The notes beneath the pieces were generated by a model. It had not been told where the DNA came from. It saw only the letters and a program-made list of their open reading frames with translations, and ran no database searches. Made by a program: the position numbers and the translations under genes. From contig OZ176056.1 in the NCBI GenBank assembly GCA_964247055.1, positions 5,766,001 to 5,830,000 of the forward strand: DNA of 64,000 nucleotides, in the 5' to 3' direction. The stretch is from Paragordius varius. Lineage: Eukaryota > Animalia > Nematomorpha. Below, in pieces: positions 42,262 to 64,000 of this stretch (position 1 is the first letter of the stretch; every line of letters begins with the position of its first letter).

Positions 42262-43975
42262 AAAGATGATGAAGATGACGCGGCCACCAAGCAGGTACGA
42301 TTTTTGGCTCTAAAATCGCTGGATGTAAATAAGAAAGTGGTCGAAGAGGCAACGATCACTGACCAACGGTTATCAAAAGTTAAAAATGCTCTCAGGACAA
42401 ACAGTTGGATCGACGAAGATCTGAAACCTTTTTTAAAACATAAAAACGACTTGGAGTGTTGTTATAATCTGTTATACCTGAATTTATCGCTTAGTGATAC
42501 CACAAGCGATGCAGGAAACGATATTGAAACTTCTGCATACGGGACACAGCGGGCTAAAAACAATGAAAGCCCAAGCCCGGTGTTCGGTATTTTGGCCCGA
42601 ATTAGACACCGATCTAGAGAATTATGTGGAAAGGTGCGAGGCTTGCCAAACCTATCGACCTAACGCACCTGAAAATCTTCCCTATCGATGGAATTTTAAC
42701 ACTTTGACATGGGAAAGGTTACATATAGATGTTGCTGGACCGGTGGACGGATATTATTGGTTAGTGACTATCGATAGCGCCTCACGGTGGGTAGAGATAG
42801 ATCTTCTTAAATCAATAACGAAAAGCGTTTTAAATTGCCTGGAAAAACACATCGCACGATTCGGTTTTCCCCGCCAAATTGTGACCGATAACGCCACGTA
42901 TTTTACTTCAAGAGAATTTACGACTCTCCTAAATCATATGAATATAAAGCACATCTGTGCAGCCTTCTTTCACCCCAAAACAAACGGTTTAGTAGGGAGA
43001 GTAATAAAGACATTATAAACGAAATACGCCGCTACTAAGACCCAACAAATGCATGCATATGAAGCTATCAACACGGTCCTTTATTCGTATCGAACTAGCA
43101 TGCATTCTTCGCTAAAAGAAACGCCTTCCGCCATATTCCTAAAACGGCGTGTACACAATCCTATCTCTTGGGTAAAAACAACCCCTGTCGAATTTATAGA
43201 GCACGAAAATGACCGAGACGCGAATTCCAACAATACGATCCTGTCTATATTAAAAATGAAATGGCCGTAGGCTAACGGCCAGGTCACATTCTGGAGAGAA
43301 GGGGGTTACTCTCGTATGAAGTGCAAGATGAGGAAGGGATTCGAAAACGTAAACATGCAGATCAGTTACGACGTAGGTCAGGAGGGAATTCATACGAAAC
43401 TAATCCCTTAATAGAGCATTATCCCAGCGTCGAAAGTGTCCCGGGTCATGTCGAGGTAGCCCACTCCGAACAAACCTTCCATCCCACCTCGGAATCTCAA
43501 ATAGCCCATGCCCCAACGCCTGCTACCTCATGGCAAGACGTAGCCCCAGAATCGCTGACGCCTGTAGAGGCTACACCCGACAAGGTAAAGGAGGTTTTTG
43601 ACCTACCCGAGCGTAATCCGCTAAGAAGACGGCAGCCTTCCGATCGTTTAAACTTACAGGTATAATGTACGAACACGACAGCCCCCGTGGTTAACTTAGG
43701 GGGAGAGTAATGTAAGGTTATAATATTCTATTTTAATAACACACTCAATACATGTTGCATCAGTTATTTTGTATTTGAATATTATATATATATTTCGTGT
43801 TAAAGCTTATCTGTTGTTAGGAATAACCATTGTGTACTACGCAAATAAGGCATGCACACATAAAAAGAACTTGTGATATAATAGCAACTCACTTTTTTAT
43901 TTTTGGTTTTTCTTTTTATCGCTCAACTCTATTTTATTATACCATACTGCTATACGTGAATAAATCAACCTTACA
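42262..43975 (+). mobile_element. Ty3/Gypsy retrotransposon 3' fragment: integrase, PPT and 3' LTR
   Basis: HHCC (HTGHSG..CEAC), WERLHID, IVTDN, and NGLVGR (catalytic E changed to G); frameshifts and a stop. PPT TTAGGGGGAGAG, then LTR 43711-43975 TGTAA...TTACA. Confidence 0.92.
43711..43975 (+). repeat. 3' LTR (265 bp)
   Basis: Immediately follows the PPT; TGTAA/TTACA terminal inverted pentamers. No 5' LTR partner was found in the window. Confidence 0.75.
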
Positions 43976-50316: not shown

Positions 50317-51624
50317 TTAAATATATAGTTAATTTATTTAGTAAATATCTTATTTTTCTATAACTTTTTTCAAGATTAATTAGAAAAAATTAAAAACAAG
50401 TAAAAAAAACAAAATAGTGGAAATGGTGTGAGGGTATTAATAACTAGTAAAAACCAGTAAACATTACTGGAATGAAAGCTAAGTAAACAGGGTTTCTTTT
50501 TTGATTCACTTCACCCATAGTTGTAAAAAGACTTATAATGGATGGATTGATCATAATACAATCGTTTATTGTAAAATATTTTTATAAGAATGTACAGAAA
50601 TAGCCTAAAATTATTTATTTATCTATTTTTTTAATCATTAAAACGCGTTTTTGCCATTTATTTAACTATATTTTAAAATGCGTCATTCTTTACATATTTA
50701 TTTAAGTATCTTCTTATAATTATTACAATGAAATATGGTTTATACAGTATAAATCGTTGAAAAAGCTTAAATAACTTTACTTTTTTACAAAATATTATTC
50801 CACGCTGATATGATTTAAATATCGCAACCACCAGAAAAATATAAATTTAAATAATTATTTTAATATAACTTAATTAGATATAGTATACCATTTCCCAGTC
50901 TAAATAGTTTTCCCAGTCAATCGAAACATTTTCCCAGTCAATCGAAACGTTTTCCCAGTCAATCGAAACGTTTTCCCAGTCAATCGAAACGCTTTCCTAG
51001 TTAATCGAAACGTTTTCCCAGTCAATCAAAACATTTTCCCAGTCAATCGAAACATTTTCCCATCAATAAAAACGTTTTCCCAGTCAATAATAACGGTTTT
51101 AATTTTGATGATTAATATCAAAACAAGATATAAATACAACTTTTGATCATTATCAGCGTAATATTAGGACATTATTTTTTATCAAAACACAATTATTGAA
51201 TGACAAATTTTTCAAATATATTTTTGTTGACAATCATTAATGTATTCTTTAGAAGTTTTATTTTTTGTAATTCGAGATATTTTTAAGAGAATGTTTTTTA
51301 TTTTATCGATGGTTCGCATGAATATTTGCGGAACTTAAAAAATCTATAGTTACGGAAGAAATAATAAAATTTATAAAAATATACAGTTTTCATCTTAATG
51401 GTCATTTAACACTTCTTGGGTCTTAAACATAAATTTAACTCTATTTTTTATATTTATCATTTGGTTCATCGAAGGCCTAAGGCGGCCTTCCGAATCTTTG
51501 TGCGGTCCGCGAAAAATTTTGAAATCCAATGCAAAAATATGCCTTCAATTAGTAAAATTCATATTTCTTACGCTATTATTTTGATTGAGTCTATAAAATT
51601 GGCAACGAATTAAAAAAAAATATA

Positions 51625-52179
51625 CCATTTGCACTTCAAGAGTGTCCTTCAACACATCAAGTTGGTCCTTGAACGCTTCAAGTTGTCCTTGAACACTTTA
51701 AGTTGGTCCTTAAAATTTATAAATTTGATTTAACCATAATTTTTGCATTTATTTTTTTATTTTATTATTTATTAACCTAATTTTCTTTATGTGTTATATA
51801 TTTATTCATATAAAAATAAAATTTTTTATTAAAAAACTACTTTTTATTTCAAACTATTTTTTTTCAATTGAACAGAATTGTCTTTTAAATGTTTTTGAAT
51901 AAAAATTTTAATTAATAACCCAGAAAACATATATATTTTTTCAATTCGTGTTAAAATCTTAAAAATCCAAAATTATTTTAAGAAATTAATAAAGATATAC
52001 GGTTTTTCAAAGCTTAAAAGATGAAATCGATTCAAAATTTATGTTATATAATAGAAAATAGGTTCAAAACAGTAAAATATATGAATTATTTACGATATGA
52101 TTGATAAAAGTTAAAAACAAAACAAAAAAGTCAAAGGACCAACTTGAAGTGTTCAAGGACACTCTTGAAGTGCAAATGG
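51625..52179. mobile_element. MITE with CCATTTGCAC termini and 21-bp subrepeats, nested in array unit 1
   Basis: TATA|CCATTTGCACTTCAAGAGTGTCC ... GGACACTCTTGAAGTGCAAATGG|TGTA. The empty site aattaaaaaa-tata-ttgtgtttg is present in unit 3 (~55045-55070, reverse). Confidence 0.88.
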
Positions 52180-53997
52180 TGTATTGTGTTTGTACTTTAG
52201 AATCATGTCTAAGATCGAATAAATTATTTATGAATGTCGGTATATAATAGGAATCAGCAACGCCGTGCTTTTTGAGTTAAAATGCGGCCCGCAAAGCCAT
52301 TGTGTTAGAATATCCTTTTCTATCAAATATTTTTAATGAATAACATATTAAAACCATATTTAGATTTTTTCCGACAGTATTTTATATACAATTTGACATG
52401 TTTATAATCCAATTTGCGTTAAATAACCAATTTGAGATGAAAGTGGTATATTTTTATAAATTTTATTATCCGTAACTATAGACTTTATAAGTTAGCCTCG
52501 AATATTAATGCGAACCATTGATAAAATAAAAAAAATATTAAATATATTCTTAATTATACTTAAAAACCATAAACTATTTTTCCAGTTAATAAAATATAGC
52601 TCCTAAAGAATTTAATTATTAATGATTGTGTATTGGAATATATAGAAAATATTTTCATTCAATCATTGTTAAAAAATAATATGCTAATATTACGTTGATA
52701 ATGGTTAAAAGTTATTTTTATATCATGTTTCGATATTTTTTATCAAAATTAAAACCGTTTTTATTGACTGGAAAAACGTTTTTATTGATTGGGAATATGT
52801 TTTTATTGATTGGGAAAATGTTTTTATTGACTGAGAAAATGTTTCGATTGACTGCGAAAATGTTTCGATTGACTGAGAAAACGTTTCGATCGATTGGGAA
52901 AATGTTTCGATTGACTGAGAAAACGTTTTCCCAGTCAATCGAAACGTTTTCCCAGATCGCATTTTCCAGTCAATAAAAACATTTTCCCAATCAATAAAAA
53001 CGTTTTCCCAGGCAATAAAAACGGTTTTATTTTTGATGATAAATATCAAAACAATATAAAAACACCTTTTAACCATTATTAGCGTAATATATGGAGATAA
53101 TTTTTAATTAAAAACACAATTATTGAATGACAATTTTTCCAAGTATATACCAGTGCACAATCATAAATGATTTGTTCTTTAAATGTTAAATTTTTGGAAT
53201 TTGAGTTTAGATAATATTTTTTATTTTATCGATGGTTCGCATTAATATTTGCGGTCAACCAAAAAAATATATAGTTACGGAGGAATTATTAAAATTTACA
53301 AAAATATACCATTTTTATCACAAAGGTCATTTAACACTTTATATTGGATCTTAAACATAAATTTTACGCTAATTTTATAATATTTAACATTTAATTCAGC
53401 GGGGGCCTATGGCGGCCTTTCGAGTATCTTTGTGCGGGCCGCAAAAAATTTGGAAAACCATATGCAAAAATATGCCCACAATATCTTAATAATCATATTT
53501 CTTACACAATTATTATGAATGAATCTATTAAATTGGTAATGAATTAAAAAAAAATTGATATATTGTTTTTGATTTTACAGTCTTATTAATCGAAAAATTA
53601 TGTGAATACCCGTATATATTTCGAATGGGGAACCGTGTGGCTTTTGAGTTAAAAATGCGGCCTGCGAAGGCATTTAGTTGGACACCCTTGTTTTAGTCAA
53701 ATATCCTTTTTATTAAATATTGATATTTTTTCCGACAGTATTTTTATCGACAAACCGGACATATTTAAAAATTGTGAAGCGTCCGCAAATATTAATGCGA
53801 ACCATCGATAAAATAAAAAATATTATCTAAACTCAAATTCCAAATTAATAATGATTGTGCACTAAAATATATATACTTGAAAAAAATGTCATTCAATAAT
53901 TGTGTTTTTAATTAAAAATTAATCCATATATTACGCTAATAATGGTTAAAAGTTGTTTTTTTATTCCTGTTTTGATATTTATCATCAAAAATAAAAC

Positions 53998-54269
53998 CGT
54001 TTTTATTGACTGGGAAAACGTTTTTGATTGGGAAAATGTTTTTATTGACTGGGAAAATGTTTCGATTGACTGGGAAAACGTTTCGATTGACTGGGAAAAT
54101 GTTTTTATTGACTGGGAAAATGTTTCGATTGACTGGGAAAACGTTTCGATTGACTGGGAAAACGTTTCGATTGACTGGGAAAACGTTTCGATTGACTGGG
54201 AAAACGTTTCGATTGACTGGGAAAATATTTCGATTGACTGGGAAAATGTTTATTTAGACTGGGAAATGG
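53998..54269 (-). repeat. 21-bp tandem array (~12 units)
   Basis: (GACTGGGAAAACGTTTCGATT)n; further arrays at 50907-51090, 52755-53010, 54315-54460, 55580-55640 and 56645-56747. Confidence 0.95.
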
Positions 54270-57200
54270 TATACCATTTCCCAGTCTAAATGCTTAGGTA
54301 GGTTTTTTCACATACCATTTCCCAATCAAAATAAACGTTTTCCCAGTCAATAGAAACATTTTCCTAGTCAATCGAAACGTTTTCCCAGTCAATCGAAACA
54401 TTTTCCCAATCAATAAAAACATTTTCCCAATCAATAAAAACGTTTTCCCAGTCAATAAAAACGGTTATATTTTTGATGATAAGTATCAAAACAAGATAAT
54501 AAAAATAACTTTTAACCATTATCAGCGCAATATTAGGATATTATTTTTTATAAAATCACAATTATTTAATGACAATATTTCCTATATATTCCAATACACA
54601 CTCATTAATAATTTATTCTTTAAAAGCTATATTTTATTAACTGGAAGAATATTTTATGGTTTGTAAGTATTTTTAAGAAAATATTTAATAATTTTTTTAT
54701 TTTATCGATGGATCGCATTAATATTCAGGCTAACTTTTAAAGTCTATAGTTACGGATAATAAAATTTATAAAAATATACCATTTTTATCTTAAATTGGTC
54801 AGTTAACACTTCAAATTAGATCATAAACATGTCGAATTGTCTAAAAAATACTGTCGGAAAAAACTTTGAACAAAACATGGTTTTAAATATGTTTTTCATT
54901 TAAAAATATTTTATAAAAAAGGATATTCTAACACAATGGCTTTGCGGGCCGCATTTTTAACTCAAAAAGCACTGCGTTCCGAATTCGTAATATAAGGACA
55001 TTCATAAATAATTTATTCGATCTTAACCATAAGACTGTCAAGTACAAACACAATATATTTTTTAATTCGTTGTCAATTTTATAGACTCATTCAGAATAAT
55101 AGCGTAAGAAATATGAATTTTATTAAGATCTTGTGGGCATGGATTTCCAAATTTTTTGCGGGCCGCACAAAGATCGATGAACCAAATGAAATATAAAAAA
55201 TAGGGTAAAATTTATGTTTAAAACCCAATATGAAGTGTTAAATGACCAATTTCAGATAAAAATGTATATTTTTATAAATTTTATTATCCGTAACTATAGA
55301 CTTTAAAAGTTAGCCTCGAATATTAATGCTATCCATCGATAAAATAAAATTTTTTTAAATATTTTCTTAAAAATACTTACAAACCATAAAATATTCTTCC
55401 ATTTAATAAAATATAGCTTTTAAAGAATAAATTATTAATGATTGTGTATTGGAATATATAGGAAATATTGTCATTAAATAATTGTGATTTTATAAAAAAT
55501 AATATCCTAATATTGCGCTGATAATGGTTAAAAGTTATTTTTCTTATCTTGTTTTGATACTTATCATCAAAAATAAAACCGTTTTTATTGACTGGGAAAA
55601 CGTTTTTATTGATTGGGAAAGATTGGGAAAATGTTTTTATTTTTGATGATTAATATATTAAAACAAGAATATAAAAACAACTTTTAATAATTATCAGCGT
55701 AATATATGGATATTATTTTTAAAAAAACACAATTATTGAATGACAATTTTTTCCAAGTATATTCCAGTGCACAATCATTAATGACTTATTCTTTAAAAGT
55801 TATATTTATGAAAAGATATTTTTAATATAATATTTTTTATTTTATCGATGGTTCCCATTAATCTTTGCGGAACGCTTCACAATATTTTTTAAATATGTCA
55901 AGTTTGCCGTAAAAATACTGTCGGAAAAAATATATAAACGAAAATTTTTTTTGATAAAAATGTTTTTGATTTAAAAATATTTAATAAAAAGGAAAATGCC
56001 TTTGCGGACCGCATTTTTAACTCAACAAGCACGGCGTTCCGCATTCGAAATATATACGGGCATTCACATTATTCGATTAATTAGACTGTAAAATACAAAA
56101 TACGTTTTTTTAAATCGTTACCAATTTAATAGACTCATTCATAATAATTGCGTAAGAAATATGAGTATTACTAAGATTTTGTGGGCATATTTTTGCATAT
56201 GGATTTCTAAATTTTTTGCGGGCCGCACAAAGATACTCGGAATGCCACCTTAGGCCCCCGATAAACCAAATAATAATTAGTATAAAATTAGGGTGAAATT
56301 TATGTTTGAGATCTATGAAGTGTTAAATGACCTTTGAGATAAAAATGGTATTTTTTATAAATTTTATTATTTCCTCCGTAACTATAGATTTTTTAAGTTA
56401 GCCGCATATATTAATGCGAACCATCGATAAAATAAAAAATATTATATTAAAAACATCTCGAATTCCAAAAGTATAACTTCAAAAGAATAAGTCATTAATG
56501 ATTGCGCACTGGAATATACTTGAAAGAATTGGTATTCAATAATTGTGTCTTTATAAATAATAATATCCATATATTACGCTGATAATAATGGTTAAAAGTT
56601 GTTTTTATATTCTTGTTTTAATATTTATCATCAAAAATGAAACCGTTTTTATTGACTGCTAAAACGTTTCTATTGAATGGAATGTTTCGATTGACTGAGA
56701 AAACGTTTCGATTGACTGGGAAAACGTTTATTTAGATTGGGAAATGGTATGTGAAAAAACCTACCTAAGCGGGCATTTTTAATATTTAAAAAATATTAGG
56801 TTTGAGCTAATTGAAGCAGTTTTATGGATATTTGTTTCAAAAAACTAAGTTAAATTATTGAATTTCCAAGTTAAGCCATAAGTTAGTAAAATAAATTAAT
56901 CACTATTTCAAAAATGCCGCCTCATAGTTTTTTATAAGAATATGGCAATTAATTAAGTAGTCTTGGAATTTATATTTCATGAAAAATTTATCCCCGAATC
57001 TATCATTTGCTCATCTTATAAAAAAGTTGAATTTTTTTTTTAAAATATTTGGATGACGCTCAAATCTTTGAAAACTAAATTATATATTGTCCTTATTAAC
57101 TTTTCAACTGAATACTGCATATTATGGTTTATTAATTTGTTAATATATCATTTACGCTTTAAGAGTTGCCTTTAACACCTCAAGTCGGTCCTTAACACTT

Positions 57201-57313
57201 CAAGTTGGTTCTAGAACACTTCAAGTCGGTCATTTAACAGTTTAAGTTTTACCTTCAACTTTTTTAAATATCTTCTTAACTTTTATCAATCACACCGTGT
57301 ACGATAAATATAT

Positions 57314-57854
57314 GCCCTTTGCACCTCAACAGTGTCCTTGAACAGCTCGAGTTAGTCCTTAAAAATTTCAAGTTAAACCTTGAGCACTTCAAGTTTCTCC
57401 TTGAACACTTCAAGTTGGTCCTATAAATTTTAAATTAGGATTTTACCAAAATTTTTATATGTATTTTTTTTTATTATTTTTTAACCTAATTTTTCTTATT
57501 TATTATATATTTATTCCTTTTAACATAAAATATTTCATTAAAAAACCACTTTTTTTGATTTAAACTAAATTTTTCCAATTGAACAAAATTATTAATTTAT
57601 AAATGTTTTAAATGAAAACTTGTAATTGATAACCCACCTCTATAATTTTTAATTACATGTTTTAAATCATAATAAAATGTTATATATATTTTAATATAAA
57701 GATAGATTGTTTCTGAATGATTAAAAGTTGATAGAATTAAATTAATACAAGAGTCGATTGATAGAAATTAAATACAAAACAAAGTTAAAGGACCAACTTA
57801 AAGTGTTCAAGGACCATCTTGCAGCGTTCAAGGACACTCATGAAGCTGAAATAG
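57314..57854. mobile_element. Second, diverged copy of the 51625-52179 MITE
   Basis: ttgaacacttcaagttggtcc repeats and their reverse complements; collinear AT-rich core. An extra partial repeat block lies at 57165-57260. Confidence 0.8.
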
Positions 57855-58009
57855 TATGTATCAAATATTATATGTATATATATATATATATATATATTTA
57901 ATTTTAAAAACAAAACAATCTTTGTTATATCATCCCAGCATAAAAAGTCCATTATTTAAAAATTATTTAAGATATTTGCTTTTGAAACCTGATGTATTTT
58001 GCCTTTTAG

Positions 58010-59100
58010 GCGCATTTTTTAATAAAACGTAGACATCGTTATAAGAGTGTAATGTGTTGGTTTATTTTGTGAAAAAAGTCGCAGTTAGGAGTTTTATAAT
58101 CAATATTGGCTGAATGATAAACGACAATCGAAGATAAAATAAGGAGTTATTTATAATAAAGCAGTTATTTTAGATAATTTTACTTTAGTACTGTCTTAAA
58201 ACTTTTTAAAACACACAACTGATTTTAGATCCGTTGAATAATACTAGGAAAAATTAAAAACACATTGGGATATTTTGAGAGAATGAAAGACCATAGTAAT
58301 CAATGCATACTACCCATAGAATGAATATTTGATTTGTAATATAAGGTATACTTTGAGGTTATAAAGTTTATGGGCTAGGTTCAGGGATTGGAATTGTCAA
58401 AAAATAGGTGAGTATAGGTGAGTGTCATAAGTAGTTTGCTACGATAGCTGGCGCCAAAAGATTTAAGAAAGCCTGACACAATTTAAAAACGAATCTGAAA
58501 TCGCAAAGCTTTCTGTTCATCGTTCCTGCCTCATATTATCAGGTGTAGAAGCTTAACAGTCCAAATTTTAGTTTCAATTAAATTTTTTTTACCGGGTATA
58601 TCAAAAAAACCTTGAACCTTTGTTAACATTTTTAGTAATTGTGGTTTCGACTTTTCCGAAGATCACTACTATTGACTTTTAATGCAATCAGTACCAGTTT
58701 TTGGTTAATCATTAACATTTGCATGTTACACCTATTCTCGAATAAAGAGTCACCTTCACTAAAATAAATAAAAGCCAAAAAGCATTCGAAAAGATACATT
58801 TTGATTGCGCTAATTGCCAAACCAGCTTTTTACCTTCATAAAGCAGATAGCATTTTTTCAAAAGTATCAAAAGTGGTAAAATATTTTATAATAATATAAT
58901 TTTGGGTTTTACACAAAATAAAAGTTTTGCAACAAAAAGTGATAATTTGAATTTTATTTAAATTGAGAATATTTATTTTAAAATATTCATTAATAACCAT
59001 TCGTGATGGTTATTTATTGATTACATTATGATAATTTAGCAAAGAATTTTTTCAAATTATGTGACGCAACTACAAAAAGACACTATATCTTATGTGTTAT
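58010..59100 (+). pseudogene. Receptor tyrosine kinase-like catalytic domain relic
   Basis: Basic segment LIKRRHRYK; LGSGIGIVKK (Gly-loop-like); TIAGAKRFKK (VAVK-like); QFKNESEIAKLSVHRSCLILSG (alphaC-like); IALIAKPAFYLH (alphaE-like). Several stops and frameshifts; HRD and DFG not recognisable. Confidence 0.5.
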
Positions 59101-60504
59101 ATAGGATTTATACGTTTGATTGTTAATATAAGGATAATTATTAATCATTTTAACAATCATATTTAATTGCTATCAAATTAACTAATTGGATAATGATTTT
59201 TTGTATTATATTCCACTCTATTTGAGTGTGATCATAGCCTGACTTTAATTATATATACCTACAAATTTCTTATTAGGGATTTTTGATATTGACAATATAT
59301 TCGAACCCAAAATTTTCAATTAACACACTTTAAAAAATAATAAAATTAATACCACTACGTGGCACAAGATCAAAAAACGTATAGATTCTGTTTTATACTG
59401 GTGAACAATTTCTTATCAAGATTAATGTTATTGTATGATCAGGATTGGTAAGACTGTGCTTTAATTTTATAATCTGCCTAAAAAATTTGTTTGATCTGCC
59501 AAAGAAAACAACAGAAAATCGCGACTTCGGTAAAATGATTTATATCTATAGTCAATTACTTTTGTGAATGCCATACTTTATTATCTAACATGCAAAACAA
59601 TACAAATTTAAATCACACAGACAAAACGTATAATTTAAAAGCATATTTTTTTATGTAGACAACCATTTTTCCCAATTATTTAATCCCAATTAATATAGAT
59701 TAAGTTTAACATTTTTACTTGTCTTTTAGAAAATAAAACTTCCTTGTATATTTTTATTCTAACTGTACAATTATCATTATAGTGGAAATATTGTGAGCCT
59801 TCAGGGTCTCATACAACCTTTCTTTCTTCTTTCCAGAAAAATTTAACTTTTGACATAAAAATGAAACGTGATAAGAATGATCCCCTGTTTTTAAGAAGCA
59901 CAAATGGCATCAAGTCCACACAGTAAAACCAATATTAATACGCTAGAAGGAATTATATAAAAATATATATCTTGTAAAGCAGTTTTTTACTCGTACATTC
60001 TTTTAAATTGGATATGATTTCATTGTATTAAAAAACACGATACCCCACCCTTAAACAAATATTTAATAGCAAGTTTCAATATGGATTCTGGATAATATTC
60101 TCTTAGAGCTTTAAACGCTCTTTATAATTTACATTATACATAAATAGGTAAATTAAAATCAGTTAAAAAGCATTTAATTACGTTGTTCTATACAAATGCA
60201 ATGTTTTCTAAAAGCACGATAAAAACAAAAAGAATACTAAAACAATAATTAATAGTAGTAAATGTTTATATCTACTGTCTGATTTTGGGTTAAACCAATA
60301 ACTTTTGTTATCGCTTATGCGGGCAGATTTCGCTAACGCGATTTCAATAACTGTCATTCGTGATACCATTATATGATTATATATTTTTGCTTGATTATCT
60401 TCTGTAAATTCTGACATATAATCATTAATAATAAATCAAAATTATTTATGTACAAATCTGATTATCATAACAGTTTAACACAGGGTTACTGACCAAAAAA
60501 GACC

Positions 60505-61055
60505 TTCCGCAAAAATATATTTCTTCAAGGGCCACTGCAAAGTTCAACATATATTTCATGCCTCAATAGCGGTTACTTATAAACTAAATTAGTACACCAA
60601 GGTTTTTGCCGGTTAACACAAACATTTTTTTGCAATAAAGTCTTCTACAAAATGGATATATATTTTAACATTGACTAATATTTTTTGATAAGTGGTTATT
60701 AAAACAGGCCAATCTAACATCAGTATCCTCTGTCATTGGTATATTTAGTTTTTTGATATGCCACCTCGATCCGATTTAAAATAATCAGGATAATTTACAT
60801 TGTATATTTTAATATTTATTAACTGAGATATGTAAGTTCAGATGTATATGATCAATACCGAAGCATTAATATCAATGAAAAATCTTAGATAAATTAAAAT
60901 TCTAATTGATCGAATAAATCGGAATTCTTAAAATACTGAAAAATTAATAAATATCGATCGCAACCAAATAAAAAAAATATTACAGGGTTATTACATATCC
61001 TTTTTATGGCCGCATGCGACACGTGGTCCTCTGTTAGTATGGCTGCCTTTAAGTT
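60505..61055. mobile_element. hAT (Charlie-type) MITE relic
   Basis: AAGGGCCAC near the left end; ATGGCCGCATGCGACACGTGGTCC...GTTAGTATGGCTG near the right end. Boundaries are approximate. Confidence 0.35.
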
Positions 61056-61289
61056 TATAAATGATAAAAAATTACTACATGGCCAATTTAAAACAAAAAT
61101 CCCACTAGGTGTTTTTTAAGCGTTAAAGCTTTTTTTAATATAACCATCACCATCTTGAGTTTTAATAAATGGATACCACAAGTATTCAATAACGGTAAAA
61201 GGATAAATTTGTTGTATTTATATTCTTTGTTATATATATATATATATATAATTATAAATGTATTCACATATATCTAGGTGAAGTGCTTA

Positions 61290-63425
61290 CTTTTTTACAA
61301 TTTATTCAAAGTATAATAATGATAGTAAAGTATGGTGGTGAGGTTTCTAACAATACTCAAACATAAGTTACAAGGTTAATCTAATAATATATTACGAATG
61401 TACCTAGCACCCTTTCTACCATCCCATTACTCTTAGGATGGTAGGGGGTAACTTAATATATTTCACCCCTAACCTACATAAGGTTGACGTGAAGTACCCA
61501 TTGATAAAATACGAAGCGTTATCACTAACGATTTTTCTTGCAAGCCAAACCTTGCAATGTTTCTTCTACTTTAAAGATTATATTCGCTGCGGTTACCTTT
61601 TTCAAAATTAACCCTTCTGCCCATTTCGAGGCACTGACTATTAACAACCAATAATAAGCGTCTACTGGTCCGGCTTTAATATGCAAACGCTCCCCAGCAA
61701 CATTATGATCCCACTGATACGTGGAATTCTGAGTAACATTCGGTCTACTATGTTGGTACGATTCGCATTGACTTCTGGCTGTTACCAGGTCATTTTCTAA
61801 TTCTGGTCAATAACACGTAAAGGCTTTCGCTTTCATGGTCTCTACGTTGTTATGACCGCTGGATAGGTATTCACCACCTCTTTTTGGAGAGGCTTCGGAA
61901 TTATAATCCGATCATTTAAATTTAATAAGCCATATTGATGTGCCAACTCGTCTTTAGGTTTACAAGCTTTTCTGATTCTGGACTCTAGTCATGGTTGTTT
62001 AACGCTTTAATTACTTACTGGATCTAATGCGGTTTCTTTTCGAATATCATCTCTGCTTAACCGCACGTTATGACAATTCAAAATCTCAGATATCTGGTAA
62101 CCACATAATCTTCATCGTAGGCAACGATCTCGTTAATCGGTTATCTCGGTAAATAATCAGCTCTATTTTGAGCCCCCTTTTGATGAATTATTTCAAAGTC
62201 GTATTCATTTATCATATTAATCCATCTTATTACTTTAGTATGAATTTTTTTTATATTTTGATCTGTACTAAGGGTAAATGGTCAGTAAATATTATGAATT
62301 TTCTACCATATACGATGAAACTTTCTTAAAGCAAAAAATATTGCTTTCGATTCCTTCTCAATAGTGGAATAATTCCTTTCGGCGTTGCAACACTTTTGTG
62401 AGGCATATGCGATCGGTATCCTTTCACTATTAACCTCATGACTTAAAATAACTCGAATCCTAAATCTGACGCATCAATTTCTATTATCAATTTCCTATTC
62501 GGGTTATATGGTGTTAAAAACACTTTTCGCTTAACAAATTCTTAGCTGCAAACCAGCTTTTCTCATGTTTATCGGTCCAAGATCATCTCGTATTTTTACT
62601 AGGTAACTCATTTAAGGGACCGATCATTTATTTTGGTATAAAACGTTCATGAAACGTCAAAAAACCTAAAAAACCACGTAATAACTTTTTATCTACCGGC
62701 CTTTTTAGTTTTTTAATTGCCTTGATTTTGCTTTTACATGGGTTTATACCCTTTTCGGTTCAAACCTTAAATAATTTACTGATTCTGCACCTATCATTAT
62801 TTTATCTTGTCTTAATTTGAACGGCTTTATCAAGACGACTTAATACGTTATTTAAATTGTTAAAGTGCTCATTTTCCGTCCTACCAGTCACTAGGAGGTC
62901 ATTAAAATACGCAAACTCCCGGTCTTTCAGCCAGCACCTGTTCCATCACCCGTTGAAAGATGATGGGTGCCGTGGCCAGTCCAAACGGCATGCGTTTGTA
63001 TCTAAAATAAGTTTATGTGTTGAGATAGTTAACAAATCTTGCCACTCCTCTGCCACTGGCATTTGGAGGTAAGCATTTTTTAAATCAATATGTGAGACCT
63101 TCGCTTATTTTCGACAACTCGTCAAACGTGGGGTTATATAAGAGTCTTCTTGCAACCACTTATTAATCGTTACCCGAAAATCACTGCATATGTTTAATTC
63201 GCCATTCGGTTTAAGTACATTAACCGTAGGCGTGGCCCATGTCACAGGTGTTATGTTAGGATCAACTGGTTCTAAAAGCCTAACTTTTCTAGCCTCGTCA
63301 GCTCTTTCTCCATCTTTTCTCTCAATGGAAAAGGCATCCGACATGATAATGCTTTCGGGATCGCATTCGCTGCAATGGAATTTTTACAGGGTCTTTATAA
63401 CACCCCTGCTTATTTTCGAATAAGT
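61290..63425 (-). mobile_element. Degenerate Ty3/Gypsy pol (RT, RNase H, integrase)
   Basis: WATPTVNVLKPNG, DFRVTIN, IDLKNAYLQ, YLND, IDASDLG, IAYASQK, NYSTIEKE, FTDHLPL, WERLH..AGP and HPKSNGMVER, across many frameshifts. Confidence 0.92.
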
Positions 63426-64000
63426 TTTTATAATTTTCGAAAATCTCATTTAATTTTAAATAATAATTTTAATTTAACCCTTTAACTCTCCAACTTTTTA
63501 CATTCATGTTTGTTATTCTATAATTTGTGATTTTAGGCTCTCAATCAAACAAATTTTTCGCATTAATTACAAAATTAAATAATTTAAAAAGCTATTAAAA
63601 AAATATTTTGATTTGTGCCCTGTTTTATCAAGGTAATTACACGATAATTGTTTTACCAAAAATTACCAAATTAAAAAACCACCTATATTTTTATTATTTA
63701 TATTTAAATATAATACGTTAAACAAAAAATGGCAAATCTTAAAAAGATAAACAATTTAACCGATAATTAAAAATAATGTAGTGGAAACGGTATATAATTA
63801 AATATTTATAAAAAAAACTACATGTTTGCCGTTCGTCTGTGTCACCCCACACAAGGACATCACAAATATAAAGGCATAAATATTGCATAAAACGTTAGGG
63901 TTGTCTAGAACCATTCAACATTAAATTATTATCAAAGGACATGATGGCTAAATTTATATAAAACATTAAAATTTCAGTCAAAAAATGCATTAATATTACG

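Follow-up and report, generated by a model that had tools for sequence, protein, structure and literature searches.

A four-unit block of foldback elements in Paragordius varius as a probable pile-up of independent insertions with eroded joints

The stretch studied here, hereafter the window, comprises 64,000 nucleotides of the genome of the nematomorph Paragordius varius (GenBank assembly GCA_964247055.1, contig OZ176056.1, here C7:5766001-5830000), and in it the region 50888-56770 is occupied by four units, U1-U4, of a family of non-coding foldback-type MITEs (miniature inverted-repeat transposable elements), i.e. non-autonomous cut-and-paste DNA transposons. We hold it likely that this locus is a pile-up of four independent foldback copies at shared TATA sites, the joints of which were then eroded. 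The direct evidence comprises the independence of the units, the order of events at U3 and U4, the microhomologies at the joints of U1 with U2 (J1) and of U3 with U4 (J3), an insert templated on an element end and an excess of abutted joints in the 110.6-Mb assembly (44 contigs), over which the genome searches were run. Positions given without a contig are those of the window.

The cores of the four units are oriented -,-,+,+, the two-and-two arrangement that an earlier sequence-only reading of the window had reported. U1 (50888-52924, core -), whose left end adjoins a TATA at 50884-50887, retains its outer terminus and an array of ~9 21-bp units (8.7 copies by Tandem Repeats Finder) and lacks an inner terminus. 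It is followed by U2 (52925-54269, core -), with a right array of 13 units and an intact right terminus, by U3 (54315-55632, core +), with a right array reduced to 2-3 units, and by U4 (55633-56746, core +). Their joints form a series: at U2|U3 (J2) both termini stand around one TATA, and at U1|U2 (J1, 52913-52936) both have been lost symmetrically at an 8-bp palindrome, AAACGTTT. J2 is the perfect 40-bp palindrome that the earlier reading had described (54252-54291; 20+20 around the TATA at 54270-54273), and is composed of the right terminus of U2, the one shared TATA and an 18-bp left-terminus stub. A 546-nt single-stranded DNA around it folds at -179 kcal/mol (z = -27.8 against shuffled sequences). 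The 50-57 kb region has no coding capacity: it contains no open reading frame (ORF) of at least 120 aa, and the few shorter ones all lie in the arrays.

Comparison of the unit bodies without their arrays resolves two subfamilies, A (U1 and U3, 88.3% identity) and B (U2 and U4, 86.2%), and the four A-B pairs share 78-82%. Each pair of units aligns better in the same core sense (78-88%) than flipped (66-73%), and the order along the locus is A-B-|A+B+. It is not a mirror duplication, because the inversion of a dimer would read A-B-|B+A+, with U2-U3 and U1-U4 as the closest pairs. The pairs actually closest, U1-U3 and U2-U4, are not symmetric, and the two halves of what had been taken for a higher-order palindrome are not mirror images of each other. 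An arrangement of -,-,+,+ arises by chance in 1 of 8 sets of four randomly oriented cores. In the genome-wide searches, for which two units, U3 and U4, served as queries, U3 is 91-92% identical to over 10 dispersed copies, above its 88% to U1; among the matches listed for U4, one dispersed copy reaches 86%, most others 81-84% and U2 80%. In no case are adjacent units more alike than copies of the family are across the genome. U1-U4 are separate copies and not local copies of each other. As expected of separate insertions, neighbouring units differ in subfamily and U3 is missing from the outgroup paralog described below.

These comparisons bear directly on the origin proposed in the sequence-only reading, by which arrays recombine, or replication switches strands, by virtue of a palindromic core in the 21-bp monomer, such that one element polymerises in place. 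The exact coincidence of the J1 flip with a dyad, without intervening termini, would suit such a process, as would the presence of AAACGTTT in every unit and a trimer elsewhere that has only its outer termini, with coordinate lists suggesting further multi-unit loci. However, a strand switch predicts a mirror copy of one unit, whereas U1 and U2, 78% alike and thus 22% apart, represent one subfamily each and agree in core sense; further, no neighbours are closer than copies genome-wide, U3 and U4 are nearer to dispersed copies, joints that retain both termini exist, and U4 stood as a complete solo element before it became part of a dimer. The multi-unit composites are accordingly real and recurrent, but their growth from one element by template switching or array recombination is improbable in our judgement.

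The order in which U3 and U4 came together can be read from a segmental duplication of at least 33-37 kb, present as three direct copies on one contig, 232 and 198 kb apart and 95-97% alike. The window contains the left part of one copy (54292-64000, + strand), and the sisters are P1 (C7:5588156-5622999) and P3 (C7:6018704-6051766). From 54137 onward the window is collinear with P1 (from C7:5588156) at 92-95%, and with P3 from C7:6018704. The three-way homology persists 37 kb on, at C7:5857814 in the window's copy, 5622999 in P1 and 6051766 in P3, and the right edges lie beyond; on the left, the window's copy has its edge 18 bp within the end of a transposon. In the unique sequence to the right, identities over 2.4 kb are 97.1% between the window and P1, 95.1% between the window and P3 and 95.0% between P1 and P3, and P3 alone differs at 77 sites, the other two patterns accounting for 31 and 36. 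Under a rough clock, these differences would place P3 as the outgroup, i.e. ((window,P1),P3).

U4 is present in all three copies. In P3, a 104-bp unique spacer and a TATA precede a complete solo B element, which is U4 with a left end of its own, made up of a left terminus of B type (…AGTCAAAAT) and a left array of ~7 21-bp units and followed by U4's arm. In P1, the same 104-bp spacer and TATA are followed by U3 with an A-type terminus (…AGTCTAAAT) and then by the U3-U4 joint of the window, the two versions of which share 93-97% identity and carry independent substitutions. U4 is the oldest resident, and since P3 has it alone and P1 and the window have the dimer, the arrival of U3 at U4's flanking TATA falls between the first and the second duplication. 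Alignment with the solo B element of P3 also bears out the earlier proposal that U3 and U4 were joined by a deletion within the array. The deletion, near 55620 (J3, ~55621-55641), removed the remaining right array of U3, both inner termini and the entire left array of U4, and its ends meet at a 9-bp microhomology, GTTTT(T)ATT. It is unlikely that P3 lost U3 when the two left ends recombined, the terminus in P3 being B-type down to its last bases.

Two further explanations can be weighed at this point. First, the U1-U2 and U3-U4 dimers might have formed elsewhere or earlier and each moved in as a composite by its outer termini, the tetramer being the outcome of two insertions. Each dimer does have intact outer termini, TATA stands on both sides of U1-U2, and the unit itself is a nested composite that was amplified whole (an outer foldback enclosing a 523-bp MITE that has TATA flanks of its own, see below). 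Nevertheless, the U3/U4 joint occurs genome-wide solely in the window and its duplication sister P1, the U1/U2 joint is unique, and the outgroup paralog shows assembly of U3-U4 in place; we therefore consider this explanation unlikely. The junction search that the sequence-only reading had suggested found neither dimer joint elsewhere except in that duplication copy, and because of this the sequences give no sign that composites transpose as units. Second, the arrangement, known from the assembly alone, might be an artefact, whether from a misjoin within the 21-bp arrays or from a chimeric fold-back read, and arrays and palindromes are indeed difficult to assemble. Yet the U3-U4 joint is repeated in P1 at 93-97% identity with substitutions of its own, fold-back chimeras have identical arms and the arms here are of different subfamilies, and the insert described next holds ancestral markers rather than a copy of the present right end. 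We regard an artefact as very improbable.

The left end of U3 carries a 41-bp insert on the + strand (54292-54332), present in the window's copy only, which is the reverse complement of 56729-56769 and is made up of 21 bp of host flank and 20 bp of the right terminus of U4. Its first part gives rise to the outer inverted repeat of U3-U4 (54292-54312 against 56749-56769, 21 bp plus TA) that had been noted earlier. The repeat is present as described, but it belongs to the window's copy only and is not a feature of the family: its template, the 21-bp host flank right of U4 (56749-56769, + strand), stands at this position in all three paralogs, and the U3 of P1 has a plain left end without the insert. 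As a candidate family terminus the repeat was rejected, in that its exact copies are the three paralogous flanks and the window's insert, and the count of looser matches is lower than that of the control. The tract copied from the right end of U4 extends into the array to ~54380, for an event of 41-80 bp. The insert has AATCAAAAT and CCTAG, as does the right end of U4 in both P1 and P3, and AATAGAAAC, as in P1, where P3 reads AATCGAAAC; the window's own right end has since been altered at the AATCAAAAT, CCTAG and AATAGAAAC positions. As far as these sequences tell, the outer inverted repeat is a break-repair footprint templated on the right end of U4. A break in the left arm of U3 would have been followed by repair primed on the inverted arm of U4, and synthesis would have run past the U4 terminus into the flank before being joined to the 18-bp stub. 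Without the insert, which interrupts it, the J2 palindrome would extend ~150 bp per arm at ~93% identity.

At J1, the sequence reads GACTGAGAAAACGTTTTCCCAGTC (52913-52936): a right-type array flips to a left-type array with no termini between, 29 of 31 positions are palindromic, and the sequence is unique in the genome at up to 1 mismatch. The earlier reading had placed this terminus-less strand flip at 52920-52929, which agrees with an 8-bp AAACGTTT overlap at 52921-52928. It had also described the 21-bp arrays as self-palindromic; the whole 21-bp monomer is not a palindrome, and the palindromic part is its 8-bp core, AAACGTTT. That core does matter as had been surmised, being the same on both arms and forming the overlap of the U1/U2 joint: because its reverse complement is identical to it, the two arms carry it as a direct repeat, as slippage across a hairpin's base, or end joining there, would require.

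To the left of 54292 the copies part ways, the window having U1-U2 and an unrelated flank, and P1 and P3 the spacer and a further B element, X. U2 was considered as the window's copy of X and rejected, as the two are 81-84% identical against 97% for true paralogous sequence. A comparison of the region left of U1 with P1 sequence to the left of X gave no homology within 10-14 kb, and the window does not have the 104-bp spacer. An empty site for U1-U2 was not found, the flank being a repeat at 50320-50708 and unique without a paralog at 50709-50885. The boundary 54291/54292 is either that of the duplication or a later breakpoint, and the 18-bp stub may be U3's own terminus.

The family to which the units belong is widely dispersed. 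At least 374 matches to the 1306-bp U3 query (A) and at least 277 to the U4 query (B) were found, including many dispersed copies with unrelated flanks, among them ~20 full-length solo copies of the A search at 84-94% identity on nine contigs. The solo copies, 1.25-1.68 kb long, start with CCATTTCCCAGTC and finish with its complement (the start across the family being CCATTTCCC); in the ~20 copies read, the termini are conserved and TATA flanks both sides. In a reference copy (L013:1412-2982, 1571 bp), inverted arms of ~600 bp at 88% identity surround a core of ~420 bp, each arm running from the terminus through several 21-bp units to ~360 bp of unique arm. Across the family the arrays hold 3-13 copies of the terminus-like 21-bp unit, the consensus of which, TTTCCCAGTCAATCGAAACGT, matches the terminus at 11 of 13 positions and contains AAACGTTT. 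The core is itself an inner MITE of ~523 bp with CCATTTTTATC ends and TATA on both sides (L013:1957-2487, reference 546-1076; window 54775-55269 in U3), whose inverted repeats of ~55 bp include a GGTCATTTAACACTTC motif resembling the array of a sister family. Since the core is an inner element with its own ends and TATA flanks, the A/B unit is an old nested composite, an inner MITE within an outer foldback, that was amplified as one piece. We also observed pairs of the same TATA-plus-terminus ends 2.44-2.52 kb apart, with interiors absent from the A and B searches (C1:10314537-10317041, C1:11120399-11122839, C1:12885598-12888067, C2:4594777-4597228, C2:12611008-12613500 and C2:13583262-13585785), which may represent a longer family sharing the A/B ends.

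The target duplication was established from an element nested in U1. This 555-bp sister-family MITE (51625-52179), with CCATTTGCAC ends and its own 21-bp array, is bordered by TATA (51621-51624) and TGTA (52180-52183), and the uninterrupted homologous cores hold a single 4-bp stretch at its position (TATA in U2 and U3, CGTA in U4); from this the target duplication is 4 bp, in agreement with the single TATA of abutted joints. A 2-bp TA duplication of the Tc1/mariner type (Stowaway-like) was considered and found not to fit, as the joints read GG-TATA-CC and U2, U3 and U4 each hold the single 4-bp stretch, although the sites are few; such a duplication predicts that empty sites read TATATA and abutted joints GGTA-TA-TACC. 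Drosophila FB elements have a 9-bp target duplication, against the 4-bp TATA of this family, and an assignment to FB or to MuDR-related foldback elements does not fit in duplication length. The literature offered nothing usable for assigning a superfamily from a 4-bp TATA duplication.

Abutted joints recur elsewhere in the genome. Sites with TATA plus terminus number 226 + 224 at up to 1 mismatch (450 in all; control pattern 0), and terminus-TATA-terminus joints occur at three loci including J2 (54268-54275, GG-TATA-CC; control pattern none), such that one target duplication stands between two intact termini at J2 and two more loci. By chance 0.02-0.3 TATA-sharing pairs would be expected, given 225-800 elements and a genome-wide total of ~2.07 million TATA sites. 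One joint, at C1:11124718/33, reads GG-TATATA-CC. Three units, A+, B- and B-, make up the locus L033 (C6:7436.6-7441.1 kb), which has outer termini only; joint 2 of this trimer keeps both termini bar ~15 central bases, and its joint 1 is filled by 31 bp of another repeat. This filler (GAATGCGGAATTGACAG…TTTTTCAC, L033:5190-5220) has six other sites and stands twice inverted back to back on C44 (C44:11599-11660); it is probably the terminus of another transposon. Nested copies are also seen, e.g. three deep in L032, as are neighbours ~100-170 bp apart (X and U4 in P1 and P3, L048, and C2:13390058/228). By coordinates alone, the lists point to more multi-unit clusters, with abutted or multi-unit loci at C1:7340878, C7:4855295, C2:14095161, C2:8755-8760 kb, C8:3063-3068 kb, C6:2284-2290 kb and C4:11076-11079 kb. 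Separately, runs of B units were noted at C2:8755468-8760489 and C2:8851171-8854078, with right termini 1454 and 1484 bp apart and no left terminus between; judged by coordinates, the unit may be repeated there in tandem, in the manner of a satellite.

Taken as a pile-up, the locus would have had the following history. U4 (B) would have been resident first and U3 (A) would then have inserted at the TATA flanking it, bringing the right end of U3 to face the left end of U4, such that two opposed arrays formed a palindrome without a spacer; its centre would later have been deleted, the ends meeting at the microhomology. Because TATA-sharing joints are far commoner than chance, we infer that new copies are drawn to the ends of residents, perhaps via transposase bound to the arrays. 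The erosion of joints would be explained by hairpin or cruciform processing, or by transposase cuts at facing termini, followed by end joining. A more far-reaching possibility, which we offer tentatively, is that transposase homes to resident copies through the arrays and so builds islands, that composites go on to become new mobile families, and that the duplication breakpoint is a by-product. Here, array-bound transposase would steer insertions into the TATA at a resident's end, eroded composites would become new families, as the unit, an inner MITE in an outer foldback, already has, and the breakpoint of the at least 37-kb duplication at the left end of U3 would follow from cuts at facing termini.

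Several points weigh against the pile-up history. The polarity by which U3 was gained, rather than lost in P3, depends on a clock-like rooting of the three paralogs. A before-and-after comparison exists for the U3/U4 joint alone, and the history of U1/U2 is suggested by analogy with it. Target duplications cannot show a separate insertion of each unit, because TATA is invariant. The adjacency of U2 and U3 may have arisen by rearrangement or at a duplication breakpoint and not by insertion, since the window has neither the spacer nor X left of 54292. The filler in joint 1 of L033 indicates that not every joint fits a simple series, and the copy lists are lower bounds that may over-represent clusters.

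The locus is a well-resolved case of the known double-insertion route to transposon dimers. In Drosophila, dimers of the P element, hobo and Bari1 arise by double insertion (McGurk & Barbash 2018, PMC5932611). In such dimers a single target duplication separates the units, the joints are crossed by small deletions, and the junction palindrome has been proposed to form hairpins and to be prone to deletion; the dimers result from insertion preference, and older arrays have incomplete inverted repeats (PMC5932611). The P. varius locus shares the single target duplication in a joint, the joint deletions, the junction palindromes and the incomplete inverted repeats, and probably the insertion preference. 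Unlike the Drosophila dimers, the units here are non-coding foldback MITEs of two subfamilies with an invariant 4-bp TATA target, and paralogous copies of a segmental duplication provide before and after states. Moreover, since each unit is itself close to a hairpin, all joints here are palindromic irrespective of how the cores are oriented.

In architecture the family resembles Drosophila FB and Tetris elements, which are likewise non-autonomous, have long inverted arms made partly of tandem repeats and occur in many rearranged forms. In D. virilis, the arm repeats of the foldback element Tetris seeded satellite arrays (PMC4079207). The repeat unit is 21 bp here against 220 bp in Tetris, and the likeness to FB and Tetris is one of architecture. 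For the erosion of joints, a parallel is offered by centre-break palindrome revision (Cunningham et al. 2003, as cited in PMC3300023), in which, according to that citing account, spacer-less inverted repeats are broken centrally and stabilised by central deletions or insertions. On this parallel, J1 and joint 2 of L033 would correspond to the products with central deletions, and J2, with its off-centre 41-bp insert, to one with an insertion; centre-break was there shown in mammalian somatic cells with transgenes, and here it is inferred from germ-line sequence alone. The breaks could equally well come from transposase cuts where termini face each other. The event at the left end of U3 also resembles the growth of inverted repeats by repair from the other end: the rebuilt end gained 21 bp of former host flank, lengthening the repeat of the composite, and the insert event is a small, clean example of such growth.

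Other features of the window lie outside this argument. It has a GC content of ~25% and is almost devoid of long ORFs. One ORF at 42494-43018 encodes integrase zinc-binding (E 8e-15) and rve core (1.5e-11) domains; it is a retroelement fragment, unrelated to the U1-U4 locus. To the right of U4, inside the segmental duplication, further sister-family copies with a CACTTCAAGTTGGTCCTTGAA 21-bp array are found at 57144-57515 and 57784-57835. The duplication copies also contain a ~6.5-kb repeat with long internal inverted matches (L044:2100-8700, i.e. C7:5615100-5621700, with counterparts at C7:5849944-5856050 and C7:6043867-6049978), of which ~20 copies at 80-83% exist in the genome.

Finally, the locus introduces no new principle, and its value is that of a well-resolved example of a known transposon pile-up. 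It also advises caution, in that core orientation in hairpin-like elements is not evidence of palindromic duplication. What it displays, with internal dating, are steps by which cut-and-paste elements become blocks of several units without termini: a copy inserts next to a resident, the joint forms a palindrome with no spacer, and the centre of this palindrome is then lost or disrupted. For such joints it is rare to have both the state before and the state after, which the three paralogs here supply.

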